From the NCBI RefSeq assembly GCF_006345805.1, contig NW_021827130.1, positions 1 to 11,231 on the forward strand: a stretch of 11,231 bases of DNA. The letters run 5' to 3'. The notes beneath the pieces are model-generated. The model was given only the letters and a program-made list of their open reading frames with translations. It ran no database searches and was not told the origin of the DNA. Positions 1 to 11,231 of this stretch are shown piece after piece. Positions within the stretch are counted from its first letter, which is position 1. Each line of letters begins with the position of its first letter. This DNA comes from Octopus sinensis (lineage: Eukaryota). The position numbers were made by a program, and so were the translations under genes.

Positions 1-51
1 TTTTCTTTTATATTTTCTTGCTGATTTATTTTATTTTACAAATTTGTATAA

Positions 52-241
52 GGACATGCGTGGCTGTGAGGTTAAGAAACTTCCTTCTCAATCGACCGAC
101 CCCTTGAATTCAGGTTCAGTCTCTCTGTGTGGCACCTTGGGTAAGTATTTCCTATTATAACCCTGTGGGACCAAGCCTTGTGAGTTGATACAATAGATGG
201 GAACTGAAAGAATCACATGTGTGTGTGTATATATATAGATA
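52..241 (+). mobile_element. Degraded 5' half of tRNA-derived SINE family A, ending in its internal (TG)/(TA) tract
   Basis: 58-213 aligns by eye with the head of the intact copy at 10266-10410 (gtggctgtg..ggttcagtc..tggcaccttggg..ccaagccttgtgagt..gaactgaaagaa), then runs into tgtgtg/tatata. Confidence 0.75.
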
Positions 242-245
242 TATA

Positions 246-318
246 GCCTCCATAGCTCAGTGGTTAGAGCACTGGTCTCGTAAACCAGGGGTCATGAGTT
301 CAATTCTCATTGGTGGCA
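246..318 (+). tRNA. tRNA-Thr(CGT) gene or tRNA-derived head, near-intact cloverleaf
   Basis: Acceptor GCCTCCA/TGGTGGC with one mismatch (T249:T314) and discriminator A318; D arm GCTC/GAGC; anticodon arm CTGGT/ACCAG with loop CTCGTAA (CGT at 279-281); T arm ATGAG/CTCAT with loop TTCAATT; T5 run at 327-331. Confidence 0.85.
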
Positions 319-411
319 GAAGGCTATTTTTAATGCTTTTAATGGCGGTGCCCCAGCATGGCCACAGCTCGTGAGCTGAAACTAGATAAAATAAAATAAA
401 ATTAAAAAAAA
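246..411 (+). mobile_element. Composite short retroposon: tRNA-Thr head, SINE-A-like 3' tail and (TAAAA)n/A tail
   Basis: 340-386 (taatggcggtgccccagcatggccacag..ctgaaactag) matches the SINE A tail at about 10607-10652 (taaaggcggtgctccagcatggctgcag..ctgaaacaag); (TAAAA)n/A run at 387-411; flanked by TA-rich tracts. Confidence 0.65.
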
Positions 412-488
412 TATATACAACATACAATATTATACATATATATATATATATACATACATACATATATATATATATACACATGCATATA
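412..488. repeat. (TA)/(TACA) microsatellite
   Basis: Direct reading. Confidence 0.9.
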
Positions 489-532
489 TGGGTACAGGAC
501 GTCACCAACGGTGCAAATAACGTGAAATATGC

Positions 533-612
533 ATGTCTGTGGAGTACTCAGCCACTTGTCACATTAATTCCATGAGGCAACTGGAACCCTTGTCGTGTAA
601 CTGATGGACACC
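533..612 (+). mobile_element. Fragment of the 3' region of the SINE family seen at 8783-9172
   Basis: 535-557 gtctgtggagtactcagccactt vs 9061-9083 gtctgtggagtgctcagccactt (22/23), followed by similar ttaatt.ca.gag and ctggaacccttgtcgt / ccggagccctcgtcgt blocks. Confidence 0.7.
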
Positions 613-614
613 AC

Positions 615-866
615 CATGTGTACGTGTTACCGTCTCCTAGCCTTGAACTTGCATTGATAGTCCGTAAACAAGCACCACTGTCCTACAAGCAGTGTCGTTT
701 ATGTCCAACCTTCCACATCTGTCCATGAGGAAATGACCTCACTTGGAAATTACCTCCCTTGGAAACAAGCGAGGATTGGCAGCAGGAAGGGCATCCAGCT
801 GTTGTTAGATCTGCTTCAATAACAAATTCTTCCTGCTCCATGGAAAAGTGGACATGAAAACGATGT
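615..866 (+). mobile_element. Degraded SINE body/tail, possibly an alternative 3' half of the element starting at 52
   Basis: Blocks ggaagggcatccagctgt and ccatggaaaagtggac..aaaacgatg resemble my recollection of a common octopus SINE/RTE-type tail. There is no second copy in the window to confirm this. Confidence 0.4.
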
Positions 867-1191
867 AATGTCTTCTGCTGTGAGTGATGTTTTTATATTT
901 CTACAGACACAAATCATCACTTTGCTCCCGGCAACTTTACTCGTTTGGCCAACCAACTTTATTTTCTTTTCAGTTTTGGTTTTTGTTGAAAGAAACCAGA
1001 TCTCCTCGGCTCTTTGCTTTTTGGGTTTCTTTTAATTTTTTTGGAATTTTTTCTTTTATGAAAGATTTGATTTGTTCATGCCGGAGACGTACATGGAAAA
1101 TGGTTAATTTTAAGCAAGAAATATTCAACTTTAAAAGAAAAGAAAACAAACGATTGTTGTTAGAGTGATGCGTAGAAGCATGGGTATATTT

Positions 1192-2180
1192 CTGTGTGTA
1201 TGTGTGTGAATGTGTAGGTGTGTGATTGTGTGAAAGTGTGTGTGTGTGTGTGTGTCTGTGAGAATGTGTGTGTGTGTGTGTGTGTGTGAATGGTGTATGC
1301 ATATGAATATGTGTATGTGAATGTGTGTGTATGAATGTGGGTGTGTGTGTGAATGTGTACATGTGTGTGAATGTGTAGGTGTGTATTATGTGTGTGAATA
1401 TGTATGAGTGTGATTGTGTGAAAGGGTGTGTGTGTCTGTGTGAATGTGTGTGTGTGTGTGTGTGTGTGTGAATGGTGTATGCATATGAATATGTGTGTGA
1501 ATGTGTGTGTATGAATGTGGGTTGTGTGTGTGAATGTGTACATGTGTGTGAATGTGTAGGTGTGTATTATGTGTGTGAATATGTATGAGTGTGATTGTGT
1601 GAAAGGGTTGTGTGTGTCTGTGTGAATGTGTGTGTGTGTGTGAATGGTGTATGCATGTGAATATGTGAATGTGAATGGTGCATGCATGGGAATATGTGTA
1701 TGTGAATGTGTGTGTATGAATGTTGGTGTGTGAATGTGTACATGTGAGTGAATGTGTATGTGTTGATTATATGAAAGTGTGTGTGTGTGTGTGTGTGTGT
1801 GAATGGTGTATGCATGTGAATATGTGTGGGCGAATGGTGTACATGTGAATATATGTATGTGATGTGTGTTATGAATGTGTTGTGTGAATGTGTACATGTG
1901 AGTGAATGTGTGTTTTGTGATTGTGTGAAAGTGTGGTTTGTGTGTGTGAATGGTGTATGCATGTGACTATGTGTATGTGAATGTATGTGTGTGAATGTGT
2001 GTGTGTGTGTGTGAATGTGTATGTCTATGTGTGTGTTCGGCAGAGAACCGGAAACAAAACGTTTGAATAATATATTTTTGTGTGTGTGCATGTGTGTGTA
2101 TGTGTGTGTGCATGAATATGTATATATGTTTGTGTGTATGTGTGTATGTGCGTGTGTGTGCATATCTAGTATGTGTATAC
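1192..2180. repeat. Complex (TG)n/TGAA minisatellite with roughly 180-200 bp higher-order units
   Basis: Recurring anchors gaatgtgtacatgtg (ending near 1360, 1541, 1741, 1895), gaatggtgtatgcat and gtgattgtgtgaaag. Confidence 0.9.
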
Positions 2181-2200
2181 ACAGAGATATATAAAAAGCA

Positions 2201-2466
2201 GTGGAGGTGCGTGGCTTAGTGGTAAGGGTGTCAGCATCATGATCTTAAGATTGTGGTTTCGATTCCTGGACCGGGCGACACGTTGTGTTCTTGAGCAAAA
2301 CACTTCATTTCACGTTGCTCCAGTCCACTCAGCTGGCAAAAATGAGTAACGCTGTGATGGACTGGCAGGACGCCAGTCCATCTGGGGAACACATATGCCA
2401 TTGAAACCAGGAAACCGGGCCCATGAGTCTGGCTAGGCTTTAAAAGTGCGCATTTATTTATTATTC
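2201..2466 (+). mobile_element. tRNA-derived SINE with CORE/V-like central block and 12-bp TSD
   Basis: A box TGGCTTAGTGG 2212-2222; B-box-like GGTTTCGATTCC 2255-2266; ttgtgttcttgagcaaaacactt..cagctggcaaaaatgagta resembles CORE/V domains; perfect TSD ATATAAAAAGCA at 2189-2200 and 2467-2478. Confidence 0.85.
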
Positions 2467-2476
2467 ATATAAAAAG

Positions 2477-2522
2477 CACACACACTAACACACACACACA
2501 CACTAACACACACACACACATA
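2477..2522. repeat. (CA)n microsatellite with CTAA interruptions
   Basis: Direct reading. Confidence 0.9.
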
Positions 2523-2785
2523 TACTCTTTACTCTTTTACTTGTTTCAGTCATTTGACTGCGGCCATCCTGGAGACCACCTTTAGTCGAGCAAATCGACC
2601 CCGGGACTTATTCTTTGTAGCCGAGCTACTTATTCTATCGGTCTCTTTGCCGAACCGCTAAGTTACGGGGGACGTAACACAACCAGCATCGGTTTGTCCA
2701 CAATGCTAGGGGACAAACACAGACACACAAACACACACACATACATATATATATATATAATATATAATATATATATATATATATA
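2523..2785 (-). mobile_element. SINE family A, 3' half plus internal (CA)/(TA) tract, interrupted by the Penelope-like element
   Basis: 2523-2728 is collinear with about 9367-9575 of the uninterrupted copy (tactcttttacttgtttcagtcatttgactg..gggacaaacacagacacac). Confidence 0.9.
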
Positions 2786-2831
2786 ATCTATACACTATGT
2801 TACATTATCTACTTTACTTTACTCAACTCGG

Positions 2832-2905
2832 TAGTCAAGATAAAACTCTGAGTTTCAGATGCCGAAGTGGAAATCCACAACACCATCTCTTCGGTTATCT
2901 GGCTA
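2832..2905 (-). ncRNA. Type I hammerhead ribozyme-like motif (PLE sense strand), better-preserved copy
   Basis: Minus strand: stem I AGATAA (2900-2895); core CCGAAGA (2894-2888); stem II GATG..GTGG-ATTT-CCAC..CATC; T; GAAA (2856-2853); CTC-A-GAG; GUU triplet (H17 = 2844); TTATCT (2843-2838). It deviates from canonical CUGANGA at position 4 and has one extra nt before GAAA. Confidence 0.65.
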
Positions 2906-3093
2906 TTTGAAAACGTTATGAAAAAATACCGTTAAAAATGAAGGGAAATTACTCTGTTATAACTCTGCTTTGCCTGCGTACTTATACATCGCTCGCATTT
3001 TTTTCGTCATAAAAATTATATAAAATACATAAAAATATATAAAAATATATAAAAATATATAAAATCTTCTTGGACATAACACAGAAAGCATTT

Positions 3094-4519
3094 CTATCCG
3101 TTTTCTTTAGGGGACCAAAAACGTAACAGAAATTTAGTCACATGTGGGCATGATCCGAAAAGCTCTGTCCTTGTAGTTAGACATGTGGTAGGGTCTAAGC
3201 TGCTTTTCCAGATAAGCCATCATCTCTCCATGTCGCATAAACCGCACCTTCCGCTGCCGTTAGTATAGGGCTTACATCTGGCCAAAATCTTCCATTGTAT
3301 GTTATAATCGACACCTTTATCTCTTAAAGACCAAATATGATTGGATAATTGTGTCGCTTTTCTTTTGTTCCAGTGCCTAAAGCTCAAAGTGTGGTTATTG
3401 AACCTGGCCTTGAAATTACCCTCTGTCAGGCCCACGTATTTCTTCGTCGAAACGGTGTCTTTAGTGGTTATAGAGTTTACGGTAGCTTCATATATGATGG
3501 TCTTGGACATGCAAGCTCCATTTAGCGGGCACAATTCTTTATTCCTGCATGAACAGCTTTTTCTTCTTGTGTTTTTTTTTGTATGTTATGATTGATTATG
3601 TTTTTAAAATTGGTAGTTGAACTAAAACTAATTTTTAAATTGTGTCTATTAAGAGTTTCCTATAAGCATGGTTAACTGGAAAATGTCTATCTATCAGTGC
3701 TAGGAATATTTACCTATATTGAAGGCCACCTCGGGTGAGTAAGGGGGCGTAAACCAGATGACCTTCCTATTTCTATTATTCCTTTTCCTTATTGTTGGGC
3801 TGGTGATAGGATGTATATTTTATTTTTTCGCTAAAACCACTATCTTTAAAGCTTTATTATAAACTGGGGCAACGCTATTGAAGATGTCCTCATTAGATGA
3901 GAGGCTAGAAATCCTCTTACTAATATTTTTAACTAAATTTTTGAATACTATAGGGGGATGGCATGAACCTACATTAATATAACTTAGTCTATCATTGGGC
4001 TTCCTATAAGGCTTATAAATATTATTATTAAGATCTAAGGAAACGTCTAAGAAATTGACAACCGTCAGGTAGTGTCTATAGTTATACTAAGTCCGAAGTG
4101 TTTCATTAACTGGATAATATCCTCCTAAAACGATCTTGTGCTGGTCCATTTGTATTAGCTGTTAAGGCGAGGGCATCATCTTTGTAGATGGCGAAATGTA
4201 CGTTAGGGAATGTCTTACCGAAGGTATCTAGGAGAAAGAGTCCATTAGATCACAGATGCCTGCCCCATCATATGAACCCATGCTCACATCGAAAGCGCCC
4301 TCCGTGTCGGTGTTTTTTTACCCACTTTGCATTCTCACTGAAAAGTAATGTCTTTCTAGCATGGAAGATTATATCCTTATCATTGGTACTAATTTCTATG
4401 AAGTCACTAGCGAAGATTAGGGCTTTATCTAGCAGTTCTTTAGAGATAGAGGCATAAAAATCAACAATATCGAATTGTGTAAACCTCGCTTTTTTCTTAT
4501 TCTTAATAGCTTTAAACTT
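3094..4519 (-). pseudogene. Frameshifted PLE RT/GIY-YIG ORF remnant
   Basis: Continuous protein similarity needs about 9 single-base indel corrections (near 4313-4319, 4242, 4121, 4070, 3845, 3785, 3705, 3651, 3560) and there is an in-frame TGA at 3220-3222. The natural stop at 3094-3096 corresponds to 5178-5180 in the other arm. Confidence 0.88.
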
Positions 4520-4521
4520 AA

Positions 4522-5530
4522 TGGTTTTACGCCCCCTTACTCACCCGAGGTGGCCTTCAATATAGGTAAATATTTCCTAGCACTGATAGATAGACATTTT
4601 CCAGTTAACCATGCTTATAGGAAACTCTTTAATAGACACAATTTAAAAATTAGTTTTAGTTCAACTACCAATTTTAAAAACATAATCAATCATAACATAC
4701 AAAAAACACAAGAAGAAAACAGCTGTTCATGCAGGAATAAAGAATTGTGCCCGCTAAATGGAGCTTGCATGTCCAAGACCATCATATATGAAGCTACCGT
4801 AAACTCTATAACCACTAAAGACACCGTTTCGACGAAGAAATACGTGGGCCTGACAGGGTAATTTCAAGGCCAGGTTCAATAACCACACTTTGAGCTTTAG
4901 GCACTGGAACAAAAGAAAAGCGACACAATTATCCAATCATATTTGGTCTTTAAGAGATAAAGGTGTCGATTATAACATACAATGGAAGATTTTGGCCAGA
5001 TGTAAGCCCTATACTAACGGCAGCGGAAGGTGCGGTTTATGCGACATGGAGAGATTGCTTATCTGGAAAAGCAGCTTAGACCCTACCACATGTCTAAATA
5101 CAAGGACAGAGCTTTTCGGATCATGCCCACATGTGACTAAATTTCTGTTACGTTTTTGGTCCCCTAAAGAAAACGGATAGAACATGCTTTCTGTGTTATG
5201 TCCCAGAAGATTTTATATATTTTTATATATTTTTATATATTTTTATGTATTTTTATATAATTTTTATGACGAAAAATGCGAGCGATGTATAAGTACGCAG
5301 GCAAAGCAGAGTTATAACAAGAGTAATTTCCCTTCATTTTTAACGGTATTTTTTCATAACGTTTTCAAATAGCCAATAACCGAAGAGATTGTGTTGTGAT
5401 TTCCACTTCGGCATCTGAAACTCAGAGTTTTATCTTGACTACGAGTAATGTAACATATTGTATAGATAAATTTCCTCTATTTACATAATATTGAGGTCTC
5501 TTTCTTTCTTTTTTATCTTACCGTTTTAAA
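4522..5530 (+). mobile_element. Inverted copy of the PLE 3' end (inverted pseudo-LTR-like arm): linker, GIY-YIG, 3' UTR and terminus
   Basis: 4522-5467 is the reverse complement of 2786-3756 apart from scattered small indels and substitutions (e.g. 2-nt loss near 4857). It has about 63 extra terminal nt (5468-5530) before the (TA)n tract. Confidence 0.92.
5369..5441 (+). ncRNA. Hammerhead-like motif, second more degenerate copy
   Basis: Core CCGAAGA 5380-5386, GAAA 5417-5420, CTCAGAG 5421-5427, H17 = 5429. Stem I lacks a G, and stem II has a G>T change (5390) and a missing G. Confidence 0.5.
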
Positions 5531-5538
5531 TATATAAT

Positions 5539-5612
<74 letters not shown>

Positions 5613-5647
5613 CATATATATATAATAATATATATATATACATATAT
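5531..5647. repeat. Imperfect (TA)n tract, remainder of the SINE A internal microsatellite
   Basis: Direct reading; lies between the PLE end and the SINE A 5' half. Confidence 0.9.
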
Positions 5648-5801
5648 ACGACAGGCTTCTTTCAGTTTCCGTCTACCAAATCCACTCACATGGCATTGGT
5701 CGGCCCGTGGCTACAGCAGAAGACACTTGCTCAAGTGCCACGCAGTGGGACTGAACCCGGAACCATTTGGTTGTTAGGCAAGCTACTAACCACACAGCCA
5801 C
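5648..5801 (-). mobile_element. SINE family A, 5' half (tRNA-related head), continuing the copy at 2523-2785
   Basis: Collinear with 9610-9765 (acgac.g.cttctttcagtttccgtctaccaaatcca..gggactgaacccggaacca..ccacacagccac). Confidence 0.9.
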
Positions 5802-6044
5802 ATGATGATGATGATGATGATAATTTGACGTAGATAAGTGTGAAAGGAAACTGGAATGGAATGTCCTGTAGTACTTCAGAAATGAATGCCTCTTAGGAAC
5901 AGGAAAGCATCATGAGGGCTTTGAGCACTTGATGGCTTATTGTAATCATGAGGATCTCTAAGGTTACTGGAAGTAATCCAGTAGCCACTTAAGCCCTGCC
6001 AGGAAGAAGACCAATCCCCGAAACAAGTTGACTAATAATAATGA

Positions 6045-6047
6045 TAC

Positions 6048-6083
<36 letters not shown>

Positions 6084-6119
6084 CACCACTACTACTACTA
6101 CCACCACCACCACCACCAG

Positions 6120-6150
<31 letters not shown>

Positions 6151-6206
6151 TGCACTACTACTACCACCACCACCACCACTACTACTACTACTACTACCAC
6201 CACCTG

Positions 6207-6257
<51 letters not shown>

Positions 6258-6260
6258 CTG

Positions 6261-6307
<47 letters not shown>

Positions 6308-6309
6308 AC

Positions 6310-6339
<30 letters not shown>
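6045..6339. repeat. Compound (TAC)n/(CAC)n then (AAT)n microsatellite
   Basis: Direct reading; TGC interruptions at 6151, 6205 and 6259; (AAT)n at about 6310-6339. Confidence 0.95.
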
Positions 6340-6340
<1 letters not shown>

Positions 6341-6791
6341 CCAATGCACACAGATAGAGAAATTAAGGCCAACATGTCAGATATAGTTGTCAGAGATCAT
6401 GAAGAAGAAAATTGCTTTCTAATTGAAGTATCAATTCTAACAGATGACAACATTTCTCTAAAAGAAATGGAGAAACTTTCAAAATACAAAGACCTGGAAA
6501 TAGAGGTAACTCTAATGTGGAATCTAAGAACAGAAACAATTCCTATCTTAGTGGGCGCATTAGGTATGATAAAAAAAAGATATTCAGACAAATACATAAC
6601 AAAAACACCAGGACTTACAAATATATATAACATACAGAAAATTGCACTACTGGGCACTGCACACATCCTACGCAAAACACTTTCAATAAAGTAACCATCA
6701 GATTATCACAACAAATCACAGCACATACCCAAGGCACACAGAGCTGCGATCGGTAGTGAAGTGAAAGCACGTTATAAAAATAAAACTACTG
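6340..6791 (+). mobile_element. 5'-truncated R4/Dong-like non-LTR retrotransposon 3' end with restriction-like endonuclease (RLE) remnant
   Basis: 6340-6694 reads TDREIKANMSDIVVRD..LIEVSI..KEMEKLSKYKDL..MW..PILVGALG..LLGTAHILRK, the PD-(D/E)xK RLE C-terminus (canonical RPD appears as MSD). About 97 nt of 3' UTR follow; (AAT)n lies on both sides (6310-6339, 6792-6806). Confidence 0.85.
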
Positions 6792-6806
6792 AATAATAAT
6801 AATAAT

Positions 6807-7264
6807 AGATGGGCCACAGCAAATATTCTGCGCAATACCACAGATTTGCTTGTCAGTTGTTTGACCATAACCAGTTGAGCATGTCCCTTAGTGTCTGATG
6901 ATATGTGCATCTCTGATCACAAACAGAAGTAGTGGGGGAGCATCATAGCCATGTGTTGAGAGGAATTCTTTGGGGTTGGATAATTCACCTCTGGAAACAT
7001 GGGTGTTTCATTCAACATTCTTAACACACCCTTATTCAGGGACCTTTTGAGTGTGTGATGGGTTACTCGACCAGAAGAAATTCTAACTGGGCCCCACCTG
7101 CAAGGTCATGTGCTGTTTATCTTGATTGAGATCACCATGTCGCGCATATGGTTGTGATGCATGTGCCTGGTGTACCTTATCAGACGGGTAGTCATGATGG
7201 GTATATTGGGCTTCGTATATTTTACCCCAGTGTCACTTTGATGGCATGCACTGCTCTCTCACTC
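6807..7264 (+). mobile_element. Second interspersed element inserted in the (AAT)n tract; probably a LINE 3' end or non-autonomous derivative
   Basis: Non-repetitive 458-bp block bounded by (AAT)n on both sides; its start encodes TANILRN, similar to TAHILRK at the end of the adjacent RLE ORF. It resembles my recollection of a high-copy octopus repeat; strand is inferred. Confidence 0.55.
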
Positions 7265-7308
<44 letters not shown>

Positions 7309-7494
7309 TAGTGGTAGTAGTAATAATAATAATAATAATATAATAATAATAATAATAATAACAACAATAATAATAATAATAACACTAATAATGATAATGA
7401 TGATGATGATGATGATGAGGAGGAGGAGGATGAGGATGACGACGACGATGATGAGGATAATAATAATAATAATAATAACAACAATAATAATAAT
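7265..7494. repeat. Compound (AAT)n/(GAT)n/(GAG)/(GAC) trinucleotide microsatellite
   Basis: Direct reading. Confidence 0.95.
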
Positions 7495-8025
7495 GGCCTC
7501 AAATTTTGGCACAAGGTCAATAGTAATGATTATAATTTTTTGCAGTAATCAGACAACCTTGAGACAGAGTTGAAAAAGTCATAAAAGTAAAAATTTATTG
7601 GTATCTTGAGAAAAATTAATGTCTTTAAATTTAACGAATTCATTAATACACAGATGATTGTACTGAGTAACATTAATCAAAAATGTTATTGGGTATTAAT
7701 TAACCAGATAATTATAATGTTTTAAATACCAAAACACTAAATTTGTCACAGAGTTTGTTTTGAATTTAATTAAAATCTTCTTATCTTTCATCTTAACGAG
7801 TAGTTTGGCTCTACTTTGTGTTGGCAAGCTCGGAGATGTGAAACAGGACTGATGCTGTTGCAGGTTTTAACTGGTCTAGCAAGATTATAATCCCTGAGTC
7901 TGGCACCTGAGTAGTTCTATGCAAAATTTAATGGATGGTAGTGGGGGTAGGGGTGAACATAAATTAACACTCATGAAGAAACCTGCTTATTATTAGTAGT
8001 GAGTATGTAACTTTTACTATAATGA

Positions 8026-8310
8026 AATAATAATAATAATGAAATTATTGTATACAGTGCTCAGGTGCTCCACAACTTGTCAAAAGTGCATATAAAGCAT
8101 ATGCAGTAATGTACAAATGTCTGGAAAGCGAACAATGTATGAGTCAGATACATGCTTGTGTGTGTATGGAGGGGAGAAAATCAGGTGTAGTGTTGGCGAA
8201 TCTCAGGAAGCATGGAAGTTTTGAAGGATGCAGTGCTCCGACAACTAACAACTGATGCCAGCAGTTTGTTCCATGCTTCAGCAACTCTCAGCATGAAAAA
8301 GCGTTTCCTA
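8026..8310 (-). mobile_element. CR1/L2-like LINE 3' end, heavily 5'-truncated
   Basis: Minus strand RKRFFMLRVAEAWNKLLASVVSCRSTASFKTSMLPEIRQHYT* (stop 8181-8183) matches the CR1-group C-terminal FF..RV..WN.LP..VV...S...FK motif; 3' UTR and (ATT)n tail at 8026-8040. Confidence 0.75.
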
Positions 8311-8511
8311 AGAAAGCAGTTATTAAAGTTTACACTACCTAGAAGATTCTTACAAATTCCAATTTCAATAAAGAGCTCCGACAACTAACAACTGATGCCG
8401 GCAGTTTGTTCCATGCTTCAGCAACTCTCAGCGTGAAAAAATGTTTCCTAAGAAAGCAGTTATTAAAGTTTACACTACCTAGAAGATTCTTACAAATTCC
8501 AATTTCAATAA
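8232..8511. repeat. Exact head-to-tail 140-bp tandem duplication
   Basis: 8232-8371 vs 8372-8511, with 5 mismatches counted (8234, 8260, 8293, 8301, 8302). Confidence 0.95.
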
Positions 8512-8782
8512 TTTTTTTTTATTATCCAAGTGTTATTTTCAAGTTCTTTTATTATCGAAGGTTTTGACTACATGATTGAGTTAGAAAACAAATGTTAATT
8601 CACTTCAAGATAAAATCTTATGCTGTTAGCATTTTTCAAAAGCTTACTCCATTATCTTGAATGCCAAAGAGAGAGATATACTATCACAAACATATAGAAA
8701 ATCCTGTTCCAAACTACAGTATTAGAGTAAATTTTAATGCACGAACTGTTTGATGCTGTCAGCATCCAAATACACCATCTTT

Positions 8783-9172
8783 GGAGGCGCAATGGCCCAG
8801 TGGTTAGGGCAGTGGACTCGTGGTCATAGGATCGCGGTTTCGATTCCCAGACCGGGTGTTGTGAGTGTTTATTGAGCGAAAACACCTAAAGCTCCACGAG
8901 GCTCCGGCAGGGGATGGTGGTGATCCCTGCTGTACTCTTTCACCACAACTTTCTCTCACTCTTACTTCCTGTTTCTGTTGTACCTGTATTTCAAAGGGCC
9001 GGCCTTGTCACTCTCTGTGTCACGCTGAATATCCCCGAGAACTACGTTAAGGGTACACACGTCTGTGGAGTGCTCAGCCACTTACAGGTTAATTTCACGA
9101 GCAGGCTGTTCCGTTGATTCGGATTAACCGGAGCCCTCGTCGTCATAACCAACAGAGTGCTTTCATCAATCC
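8783..9172 (+). mobile_element. tRNA-derived SINE (third family) with 11-bp TSD
   Basis: A box TGGCCCAGTGG 8793-8803; B-box-like GGTTTCGATTCC 8836-8847; TSD ACACCATCTTT at 8772-8782 and 9173-9183. Confidence 0.85.
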
Positions 9173-9207
9173 ACACCATCTTTGAAATTATCAGTAAAAT
9201 CACTTGA

Positions 9208-9361
9208 GAAGAAACATGAACGGAAACTAAAAGAGATTAAAGGACATGTTTCTGGCACATATTTTGAACTCAGAATGTAAAGTTGAATGAAATACCACAA
9301 AGTATTTTGCCTGGAGTGCTAAACATTCTTCCAGCTCGCTGCCTTTTTTCCATATGTAATA
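9208..9361. repeat. 154-bp direct repeat, left copy (right copy 9771-9924), flanking a SINE A insertion
   Basis: Both copies are 154 bp with 4 substitutions counted. The segment includes what looks like an older minus-strand SINE head remnant (ttttgaactcagaa..ccagctcgc). Confidence 0.92.
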
Positions 9362-9770
9362 CTCTTTTACTCTTTTACTCTTTTACTTGTTTCAGTCATT
9401 TGACTGTGGCCATGCTGGAGCACCGCCTTTTAGTTGAGCAAATCGACCCCGGGACTTATTCTTTGTAAGCCAGTACTTATTCTATCGGTCTCTTTTGCCG
9501 AACCGCTAAGTGACGGGGACGAAAACACACCAGCATCATTTGTCAAGCAATACTAGAGGGACAAACACAGACACACACGCACATATATATATACATATAT
9601 ATACATATATACGACGGACTTCTTTCAGTTTCCGTCTACCAAATCCATTCACAAGGCTTTGGTCGGCCCGAGGCTATAGTAGAAGACACTTGCCCAAGGT
9701 GCCACGCAGTGGGACTGAACCCGGAACCATGTGGTTGGTAAGCAAGCTACTTACCACACAGCCACTCCTT
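9360..9770 (-). mobile_element. Full-length SINE family A (head, internal TA tract, body, (AAAAGAGT)n tail)
   Basis: Reverse complement of 10261-10660 at roughly 90% by eye; tail repeat tactctttt x3 at 9360-9386. Confidence 0.92.
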
Positions 9771-10045
9771 GAAGAAACATGAACGGAAACTAAAAGAGAT
9801 TAAAGGACATGTTCCTGGCACATATTTTGAACTCAGAATGTAAAGTTGAATGAAATACCACAAAGCATTTTGCCTGGAGTGCTAAAAATTCTTCCAGCTC
9901 GCTGTCTTTTTTCCATATGTAATAATAAATTTTTTTATTATATCAGTGTTTGTTTTGATATTAAGATTGAAAACAAAATCATACTTATTTTGTTTTTGGA
10001 TTTGGTTTGCAAGATTCTTTATGTGAGTTTGTGTGTTGAAGCATA

Positions 10046-10739
10046 TTGTATCTGGGGAGAGTCATTTTCTTTTTGTGCCTTATAATTTAACACACTCACC
10101 GGTAAAATTTCCACTTATTTCCTACTTTTATTTGCCTAAAATTTTCATTGCGTCTTGCAACCTTTTCAATAGTCTTGACTCTCTCTACCACTATGGTAGA
10201 GTCAAGACTATTGAAAAGGTTGCAAGATGCAATGATAATTTTAGGAAAATATAAATAAGGTGCAGGAGTGGCTGTGTGGTAAGTAGCTTGCTAACCAACC
10301 ACATGGTTCCGGGTTCAGTCCCACTGCTTGGCATCTTGGGCAACTGTCTTCTGCTATCGCCCCGGGCCGACCAATGCCTTGTGAGTGGATTTGGTAGACG
10401 GAAACAGAAAGAAGCCTGTCGTATATATGTATATATATATATAAGTGTGTGTGTATATGTTTGTGTGTCTGTGTTTTCCCCCTAGCATTGCTTGACAACC
10501 AATGCTGGTGTGTTTACGTCCCCGTCACTTAGCGGTTCGGCAAAAGAGACCGATAGAATAAGTACTGGGCTTACAAAGAATAAGTCCTGGGGTCGATTTG
10601 CTCGACTAAAGGCGGTGCTCCAGCATGGCTGCAGTCAAATGACTGAAACAAGTAAAAGAGTAAGGAATAAGTGGAAATTTTACTGGTGAGTGTGTTAAAT
10701 TATAAGGCACAAAAAGAAAATGACTCTCCCCAAATACAA
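10046..10739. mobile_element. Palindromic foldback/MITE-like element interrupted by SINE A
   Basis: Left arm 10046-10190 pairs with 10194-10260 plus 10661-10739 (e.g. ggggagagtcattttctttttgtgccttataatttaacacactcacc / ggtgagtgtgttaaattataaggcacaaaaagaaaatgactctcccc); 3-nt loop at 10191-10193. Confidence 0.85.
10261..10660 (+). mobile_element. Full-length SINE family A
   Basis: A-box-like TGGCTGTGTGG 10269-10279; B-box-like GGTTCAGTCCC 10312-10322; internal TA/TG tract about 10412-10465; possible 5-bp TSD TAAGG at 10256-10260 and 10661-10665. Confidence 0.92.
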
Positions 10740-10861
10740 CAGAAAATCATCCTTGTTTTAAAAATAAATGGACCTGAGTGTGGACTCGTTAAGCAAATTT
10801 CATCCTCGGGCAACAGTAAACGAACATTGAATCTTGATGCAAAGTCTCAGGTTAGATCAGT

Positions 10862-11084
10862 TTAAACCATTTTGTTACCATGAGTCTGTTGAAATATGTT
10901 GCCTTTGTTTTAATTAATCTTGAAAATAACAAAGAATTTAGTAAAATGGCTTTGTCATCGTTAAGCCAATAATTAGGGCAAATTAACATGGAATTTTGGG
11001 GTCACGGTTTTAATTTGGATCACTTTCAAATAGAAAATTTTTCAGGGATAGTCTTGTGGGGTGAGTTGGTATCAAAAAGGTTAA
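10862..11084. mobile_element. piggyBac-like MITE with TTAA flanks
   Basis: TTAA at 10862-10865 and 11081-11084; imperfect TIR ccattttgttacca (10867-10880) vs reverse complement of 11067-11080 cctttttgatacca (12/14). Confidence 0.6.
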
Positions 11085-11102
11085 ACCAAAATATTTGTCA
11101 AT

Positions 11103-11154
11103 ATCATCATCATCATCATCATCATCATCCTCATCATCATCGTCATCATCATCC
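11103..11154. repeat. (CAT)n microsatellite
   Basis: Direct reading. Confidence 0.95.
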
Positions 11155-11231
11155 TGTTGAACCATCCAAACATGCCAACATAGCAAACAACAGACATTAT
11201 ACACTGCTGCTGTAGATTGCTCTCTCTTTCT

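Follow-up and report, generated by a model that had tools for sequence, protein, structure and literature searches.

A tRNA-Thr(CGU) gene joined behind its own terminators to a SINE-type tail in an octopus microsatellite: a possible template-switch chimera

Introduction

In the accepted model of SINE birth, the reverse transcriptase of a LINE jumps from the tail of a LINE or SINE onto a tRNA. To our knowledge, this model has been inferred almost entirely from old, decayed families. Chimeric retrocopies that join U6 RNA to a LINE were reportedly described by Buzdin in 2002 and 2003 as products of template switching. With L2 and RTE LINEs, U6 chimeras form only by template switching, and copying of the U6 RNA invariably begins at its 3′ end, never at an internal site (PMC4476161). 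Template switching is also the proposed origin of tRNA-SINEs (PMC4476161), and the mollusc "Jigsaw-SINE" paper argues likewise (PMC4758252). Chimeras of tRNA and L1 in human are mostly made of antisense tRNA halves, and a full sense pre-tRNA is unusual, at least for L1 (bioRxiv 10.1101/2025.02.02.635956).

Octopus genomes are unusually rich in SINEs, which make up about 11.6% of the O. vulgaris genome and fall into hundreds of small recent families. In this species, 900 small, recently active families with 4,544 recent insertions have been reported (PMC13282606). We found no description of a Thr-headed SINE in the octopus repeat literature.

The unit described here occupies positions 246-410 of a stretch of 11,231 nt of Octopus sinensis DNA (NCBI RefSeq assembly GCF_006345805.1, contig NW_021827130.1, positions 1 to 11,231 of the forward strand), hereafter called the window. 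It resembles tRNA-derived SINEs with a LINE-type 3′ tail (the simple SINE2/tRNA type, the octopus elements OK, OR1 and OR2, and the tRNA-Core/tRNA-Deu families) in having a Pol III head with A and B boxes and, at its 3′ end, a module that is shared with another retroposon and closes with short tandem repeats, and in lying within AT-rich simple sequence. It differs from these families in its intact tRNA head of 70.8 bits, whereas the SINE heads elsewhere in the window are unrecognisable as tRNA, and in the native trailer with two terminators that lies between head and tail without any body or central domain.

The likeness to the U6/LINE chimeras of L1, L2 and RTE lies in the junction. In both cases a small Pol III RNA, full-length and in sense orientation, runs to the U-run by the junction and is followed by the 5′-truncated 3′ end of a retroposon. 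Both are flanked by a possible TSD, but the one found here is uninformative. The RNA concerned is a pre-tRNA instead of U6, and the 3′ partner resembles the tail of a SINE. Human tRNA/LINE-1 chimeras likewise join a tRNA to a LINE-dependent 3′ fragment, but they mostly contain antisense halves attributed to twin priming, whereas the octopus unit carries a complete sense tRNA with its trailer (bioRxiv 10.1101/2025.02.02.635956). With stringent-type LINE/SINE tails such as those of UnaL2/UnaSINE1 the unit shares a conserved hairpin structure that is followed by a short tandem repeat and kept by compensatory change; it differs in having two hairpins, and their recognition by a reverse transcriptase is putative. 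Finally, the mollusc SINEs Vhc_1, Vhc_2 and Snail also contain T4-T5 runs inside a Pol III-transcribed retroposon, but their runs are followed by C or CT and are weak, whereas both runs of the octopus unit are followed by A (PMC4758252).

Results

Organization of the unit and its surroundings

The window is AT-rich, repeat-dense animal DNA. The features needed to describe the unit are listed below; SINE A designates a SINE of about 410 nt that is present in three copies.

55-222, plus strand: decayed SINE-A-like head (tRNA-derived head and central domain), 76-79% identical to SINE A
223-245, no strand assigned: (TG)n(TA)n microsatellite of the older SINE (sequence reading, repeat search)
246-318, plus strand: tRNA-Thr(CGU), 73 nt (ARAGORN, Rfam, MFE fold, comparison with 30 metagenome tRNA-Thr loci)
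319-340, plus strand: 3′ trailer with two Pol III terminator-type T-runs, each followed by A (direct reading)
341-385, plus strand: putative SINE/LINE-type 3′ recognition module, with hairpin 1 (343-364), hairpin 2 (365-378), then GAAACTAGA (homology to the SINE-A tail)
386-410, plus strand: terminal repeat (TAAAA)n, then A8 (TRF)
411-489, no strand assigned: right-hand (TA/CATA)n microsatellite (TRF, repeat search)
2523-2790 and 5530-5805: SINE A, split copy
9362-9770, minus strand: SINE A, full copy
10261-10670, plus strand: SINE A, full copy

The tRNA-Thr(CGU) head

ARAGORN detected one tRNA in the entire window, a tRNA-Thr(cgt) at 246-318 on the plus strand. The Rfam tRNA model RF00005, whose gathering score is 29 bits, aligned to this segment over its whole length (1-71) with a score of 70.8 bits (E=3e-14). 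A previous reading of the DNA, made from the sequence only, had described a complete cloverleaf with a single acceptor mismatch, and this is borne out: T249:T314, corresponding to pair 4:69 (U4·U69), is the sole non-standard pair in the Rfam alignment, and the MFE fold is a cloverleaf in which only this position is unpaired. The A box TAGCTCAGTGG (253-263) and the B-box core GTTCAATTC (298-306) are intact by direct reading. As to the acceptor stem and the ThrRS identity elements, the pairs G1:C72 and C2:G71 and the anticodon CGU are present, while the U·U at 4:69 leaves the acceptor stem one pair short.

We compared the head with 30 loci bearing a canonical invertebrate tRNA-Thr (UGU or CGU), which were collected by a pattern scan of JGI metagenomes. 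Position 4:69 is U·G, U:A or G·U in these loci versus U·U here. In the T-stem, the head carries the pair A49:U65 where its relatives have G49:C65, and this pair is absent from all 30 loci. C60U and the discriminator A are both also seen in other CGU isoacceptors. Since G49A and C65U compensate each other, and neutral decay is an unlikely source of such a pair of changes, the head probably copies a working isodecoder and would have undergone at most about one later change.

Upstream of the head, at about -25 to -8, the microsatellite at 223-245 provides a TATA-like sequence. Judged from its A and B boxes, this upstream element and the terminators described below, the tRNA-Thr part probably remains a Pol III gene, and its predicted product would probably be an ordinary pre-tRNA bearing one acceptor U·U. 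It is reasonable to suppose, as had been suggested earlier, that termination would leave an ordinary pre-tRNA.

Heads of SINEs normally lose the tRNA fold, as the sequence-only reading had pointed out, and the other heads of the window conform to this. Neither the SINE-A copies nor the segments 2205-2290 and 8786-8870 gave a tRNA match with ARAGORN, or with Rfam even at E≤1. The head at 246-318 is therefore exceptional among the SINE heads of the window.

The trailer and the position of the junction

The trailer of the tRNA reads GAAGGCTATTTTTAATGCTTTT. It contains the T5 run reported at 327-331 and also a second run, T4 at 337-340, that had been overlooked. These runs start at +9 and +19 from the tRNA end, so that a stretch of at least four T lies within a few nucleotides downstream of the head. 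In 27 ordinary tRNA-Thr loci, the first run of at least four T, mostly a T4, is found at a median of +7 (range 4-42). In view of this distribution, the two runs have the appearance of a native terminator followed by a backup.

The homology of the tail to SINE A begins at 340/341, right behind the T4 run, in both BLAST and Smith-Waterman alignments against the three SINE-A copies. Such a start, at the very end of a T-run, is more in keeping with a template-switch chimera than with a design tuned for read-through; runs of at least four T occur about once per 110 nt on the plus strand. A SINE would be transcribable to its tail without a strong internal terminator, and here T5A and T4A intervene between head and tail. 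According to the context rule for terminator strength, T-runs followed by C are weak (PMC4758252). With two terminators, each in the strong A context, tail-bearing transcripts should be rare. An intact cloverleaf is also expected to be severed from its tail by RNase P/Z. Cleavage of this kind is probably why successful SINE heads lose the tRNA fold.

The tail module

As the sequence-only reading had proposed, the tail is homologous to the 3′ end of SINE A: positions 344-367 are identical to 9404-9427 in 23 of 24 bases, and to the copy at 10611-10634 in 21 of 24. No match to SINE A was obtained with any of 200 shuffled sequences. The (TAAAA)n ending is also real, since TRF reports (ATAAA)5.6 at 386-413. 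The unit contains only the last ~45 nt of the ~410-nt SINE A plus the repeats.

In the tail, a two-hairpin module with CAGCTCGTGAGCTG precedes (TAAAA)n. Both hairpins are kept in the four tails of the window, that is, the tail of the unit and the three SINE-A tails, and are paired in 100% of cells, as compared with only 17-43% of cells when the alignments are slid. This pairing is modest evidence, as it comes from four sequences and the value obtained is also reached in 31 of 500 shuffles. Hairpin 2 is formed by CAGCT/AGCTG in the unit and by CAGTC/GACTG in SINE A, which amounts to two compensatory pair changes; an 8-nt block of this hairpin is swapped relative to SINE A and pairing is retained.

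The terminal repeats are not the same. SINE-A copies, which are 89-96% identical to one another, end in (GTAAAAGA)n, while the tail of the tRNA-Thr unit ends in (TAAAA)n; the unit thus lacks the combination of tail and terminal repeat that characterizes SINE A. Its tail has a GC content of 60% and no GC-to-AT decay bias (0-1 vs 2-3). The retained hairpins, the compensatory changes and the different terminal repeat point to a structurally constrained sister lineage of the SINE-A tail instead of a decayed SINE-A tail. The match to SINE A, the hairpins and (ATAAA)n together give the tail a LINE-type character, with a shared 3′ module and short end repeats. Its layout resembles that of the recognition modules in stringent LINE/SINE pairs, which combine a stem-loop with repeats.

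The body of SINE A was also considered as a decayed tRNA-Thr, in which case the tRNA-Thr unit would be ancestral to it. Local and semi-global alignments were no better than those of shuffled sequences (z<1), and this candidate was rejected.

Insertion site and relative age

The unit had been described as sitting in the microsatellite of an older SINE, which is supported by the head at 55-222 and by the repeats on either side. The identity of this head to SINE A concerns the 5′ half of each copy (10261-, 9770- and 5805-). Like the other SINE heads, it gave no tRNA match with ARAGORN or Rfam. Its substitutions are biased from GC to AT (15-19 vs 6-8), and its GC content is 45%, versus 51-52% in the SINE-A copies. 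When 246-410 is removed, the joined flanks form a single continuous microsatellite. On both sides, the unit is bordered exactly by the heptamer ATATATA (239-245 and 411-417). This repeat is a candidate TSD, but it carries little information since its occurrence by chance is expected within (TA)n. No direct repeat of at least 7 nt flanks the segment 55-411, and none of at least 5 nt flanks the tail alone.

The GC-to-AT decay of the flanking head, the unbiased tail and the near-intact tRNA show, from substitution patterns, the unit at 246-410 to be younger, in all appearance, than the SINE-A-like head beside it.

The 3′ half that would complete the older SINE was sought downstream of the unit. 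The segment 490-900 has no match to the SINE-A body (z about 1) and gives only a partial match, with z about 4.8, to 9058-9101; it was rejected as the missing half. The latter interval is the 3′ part of another SINE of the window, at 8786-9175, and is homologous to 532-576, just downstream of the tRNA-Thr unit.

Copy number and database searches

No second copy joining the head to the tail is present in the window. The pattern spanning the junction gave no match in collections of metagenomes, prokaryote genomes and viruses, which contain no cephalopod DNA and are uninformative on copy number. Used as a control, the core of the SINE-A tail gave no match in the prokaryote-genome and viral contigs either, an equally uninformative outcome as these also lack cephalopod DNA.

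Open reading frames were used as a second route. The plus-frame ORF spanning the junction, searched against an index of 5.8 billion proteins, retrieved only ORFs that lie over ordinary tRNA-Thr genes. An exhaustive HMMER scan of 1.84 billion representatives with the junction-spanning minus-frame ORF likewise found only ordinary tRNA-Thr ORFs. The SINE-A antisense ORF, taken as a positive control, yielded no candidate, so that the ORF route is blind to the SINEs of this genome. A literature search with the sequence string gave no match.

Origin of the unit

We tentatively interpret the 165-bp unit at 246-410 as a proto-SINE, a chimera of pre-tRNA and SINE tail produced by template switching and inserted in the microsatellite of an older SINE; we regard this origin as plausible, if somewhat short of probable. 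A tail-specific ("stringent") LINE reverse transcriptase would have started on a 3′ module, either that of a SINE-A-type RNA or that of the partner LINE, and would have copied about 70 nt before jumping to the 3′ end of a pre-tRNA-Thr(CGU) with a trailer, a terminal U-run and a mature 5′ end. Reverse transcription would have continued up to the 5′ end of this RNA, and the product would have entered the (TA)n microsatellite of an older, decayed SINE-A-like copy. The locus would then represent either the original chimera or an early copy within a small family, and since renewed movement would need both read-through of T5 and T4 and escape from RNase P/Z, its retroposition would be rare.

Several observations count for such a chimera. 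The head is of the quality of a real gene, with its 70.8 bits and full cloverleaf, and it is followed by a native-looking trailer and terminator. A 5′-matured pre-tRNA that still has its 3′ trailer is a well-known La-bound intermediate, and the absence of a 5′ leader from the unit fits this intermediate. Had the enzyme switched to a terminated Pol III transcript at its 3′ end, the tail would start right after the T-run, where it is indeed found. The restriction of the SINE module to its last ~45 nt and repeats is that of a 5′-truncated partner. The exact ATATATA flanks and the continuity of the microsatellite upon excision also count for this reading, and the retained hairpins of a tail free of GC-to-AT bias support a younger unit in an older SINE. 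On the other side, the absence of the 3′ half of the older SINE obliges the chimera reading to assume an extra loss or another family structure. The human tRNA/L1 chimeras, mostly antisense halves, also count against it, since a complete sense pre-tRNA is not what L1, at least, usually yields (bioRxiv 10.1101/2025.02.02.635956).

The sequence-only reading had gone further and suggested that the element could be a tRNA gene that is mobile, potentially functional and able to raise the copy number of Thr(CGU). The anatomical part of this reading stands: the tRNA gene retains a Pol III stop of its own, a LINE-type tail follows, and the whole lies in the microsatellite of an older SINE. The sequence nevertheless argues against efficient mobility. 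In the corresponding explanation, the unit would be one of many copies of an established SINE family headed by a functional tRNA-Thr(CGU) gene; tRNA would come from the terminated transcripts, while occasional read-through RNAs would include the tail, be retroposed and so raise the number of Thr(CGU) genes. The Pol III head, LINE-type tail and terminal repeats do reproduce the anatomy of a simple SINE. T4-T5 runs do occur inside some SINE families of molluscs (PMC4758252), octopus genomes are rich in small recent families (the 900 of O. vulgaris; PMC13282606), and the head is nearly undamaged, be it by youth or by selection. Base rates also favour a family, as a random window is likelier to hold by chance a member of a family than a one-off event, which counts against the chimera. 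Against a family stand the tandem T5A and T4A between head and tail, given that the read-through-prone T-runs of molluscs are followed by C (PMC4758252), as well as the single copy in the window and the U·U mismatch in the acceptor stem. Cleavage by RNase P/Z should moreover cut the intact cloverleaf from the tail. We consider membership of such a family unlikely, though by no means negligible. Its fullest form, in which a LINE-mobilised family of aminoacylatable tRNA-Thr(CGU) uses a leaky T5/T4 pair to balance tRNA against retroposable RNA and enlarges the functional tRNA set of octopus, appears highly unlikely. Given the terminators and the cloverleaf, we expect the mobility of the unit to be low.

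Two further explanations were considered. The whole segment 55-411 could be one SINE-A-like copy with its tail at 341-411, whose body was replaced by the tRNA through a double switch or at a later time. The head and the tail are indeed both SINE-A-like and follow each other with the order and orientation expected; no 3′ half of the older SINE was found downstream, and tripartite chimeras are documented (PMC4476161). But the parts differ in age, the head being decayed from GC to AT while the tail is intact and the tRNA shows a few changes at most; and the direct repeats delimit the unit, with ATATATA flanking 246-410 exactly and no repeat of at least 7 nt around 55-411. This makes a single composite copy improbable. 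Alternatively, a native tRNA-Thr gene could have gained a heavily 5′-truncated SINE/LINE tail behind its terminator by chance, as the native look of its trailer and terminator would allow, severe 5′ truncation being common for LINE-dependent inserts. The tRNA, however, begins where the microsatellite of the plus-strand SINE head ends, at the spot for the body of that SINE, and must therefore have arrived after it; in addition, the tail lacks a direct repeat of at least 5 nt of its own and starts exactly at the end of the T-run. A chance encounter of this kind is the hardest of these origins to accept, along with the leaky-terminator family.

If the template-switch reading is true, the unit is a rare undecayed intermediate in which a complete tRNA with its native trailer and terminator is joined at the terminator to a tail. 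Should copies exist, they would provide a system for studying the means by which a new SINE evades both termination and the processing of its tRNA part; should the tRNA be functional, retroposition would have added to the pool of tRNA genes. As a single dead-end chimera, the unit would be a curiosity that illustrates the mechanism.

Other elements in the window

An inverted-repeat element at 2790-5460, with arms at 3092-3652 and 4629-5182 that are 96-100% complementary, is probably a head-to-head Penelope-like element. An ORF on its minus strand (3220-3534) gives a weak, sub-threshold GIY-YIG hit (E=0.0017). This element splits the SINE-A copy 2523-2790/5530-5805 inside its (TA)n microsatellite and is thus a precedent, within the window, for insertion in the (TA)n tract of a SINE.

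Both full copies of SINE A lie within repeats. The copy at 9362-9770 is found between direct repeats of 154 nt (9208-9361 and 9771-9924) that are 97% identical; their length, far beyond that of a normal TSD, suggests insertion in a tandem duplication or an odd integration or repair event. The copy at 10261-10670 is inside an 84-nt inverted repeat beside a near-perfect hairpin of 60 nt (10046-10257, 10656-10739), and looks like an insertion in a foldback or MITE-like element; the Rfam hits of these flanks are sub-threshold and plant-miRNA-like.

The window contains two more SINE families, at 2205-2440 and 8786-9175, whose tRNA-like heads, starting with GGTGCGTGGCTTAGTGG and GGCGCAATGGCCCAGTGG, are not detectable as tRNA. 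An ORF of 118 aa at 6338-6694, with (TAC)n/(TAA)n upstream and no Pfam domain, has hundreds of relatives in corals, shrimp and tunicates, the best named one being from Octopus bimaculoides (85% identity); the ORF of the window itself has no database entry. It probably encodes the C-terminal portion, which is conserved, of a retroelement protein with a wide distribution.

Outside the window, a eukaryotic contig of ENA ERZ26222911 carries at 165-3739 a tandem array with a period of 1.43 kb, in which tRNA-Thr(CGT) and tRNA-Val(TAC) alternate over three units; one of its Thr copies has an A2·G71 mismatch. The trailer of the octopus unit is similar to that of this array, a similarity that we judged coincidental. 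The remaining repeats of the window are a degenerate (TG)n-based satellite of about 840 bp (1193-2036), with a 31-bp and longer periods, and a 140-bp tandem duplication at 8235-8511, whose two copies are 97% identical.
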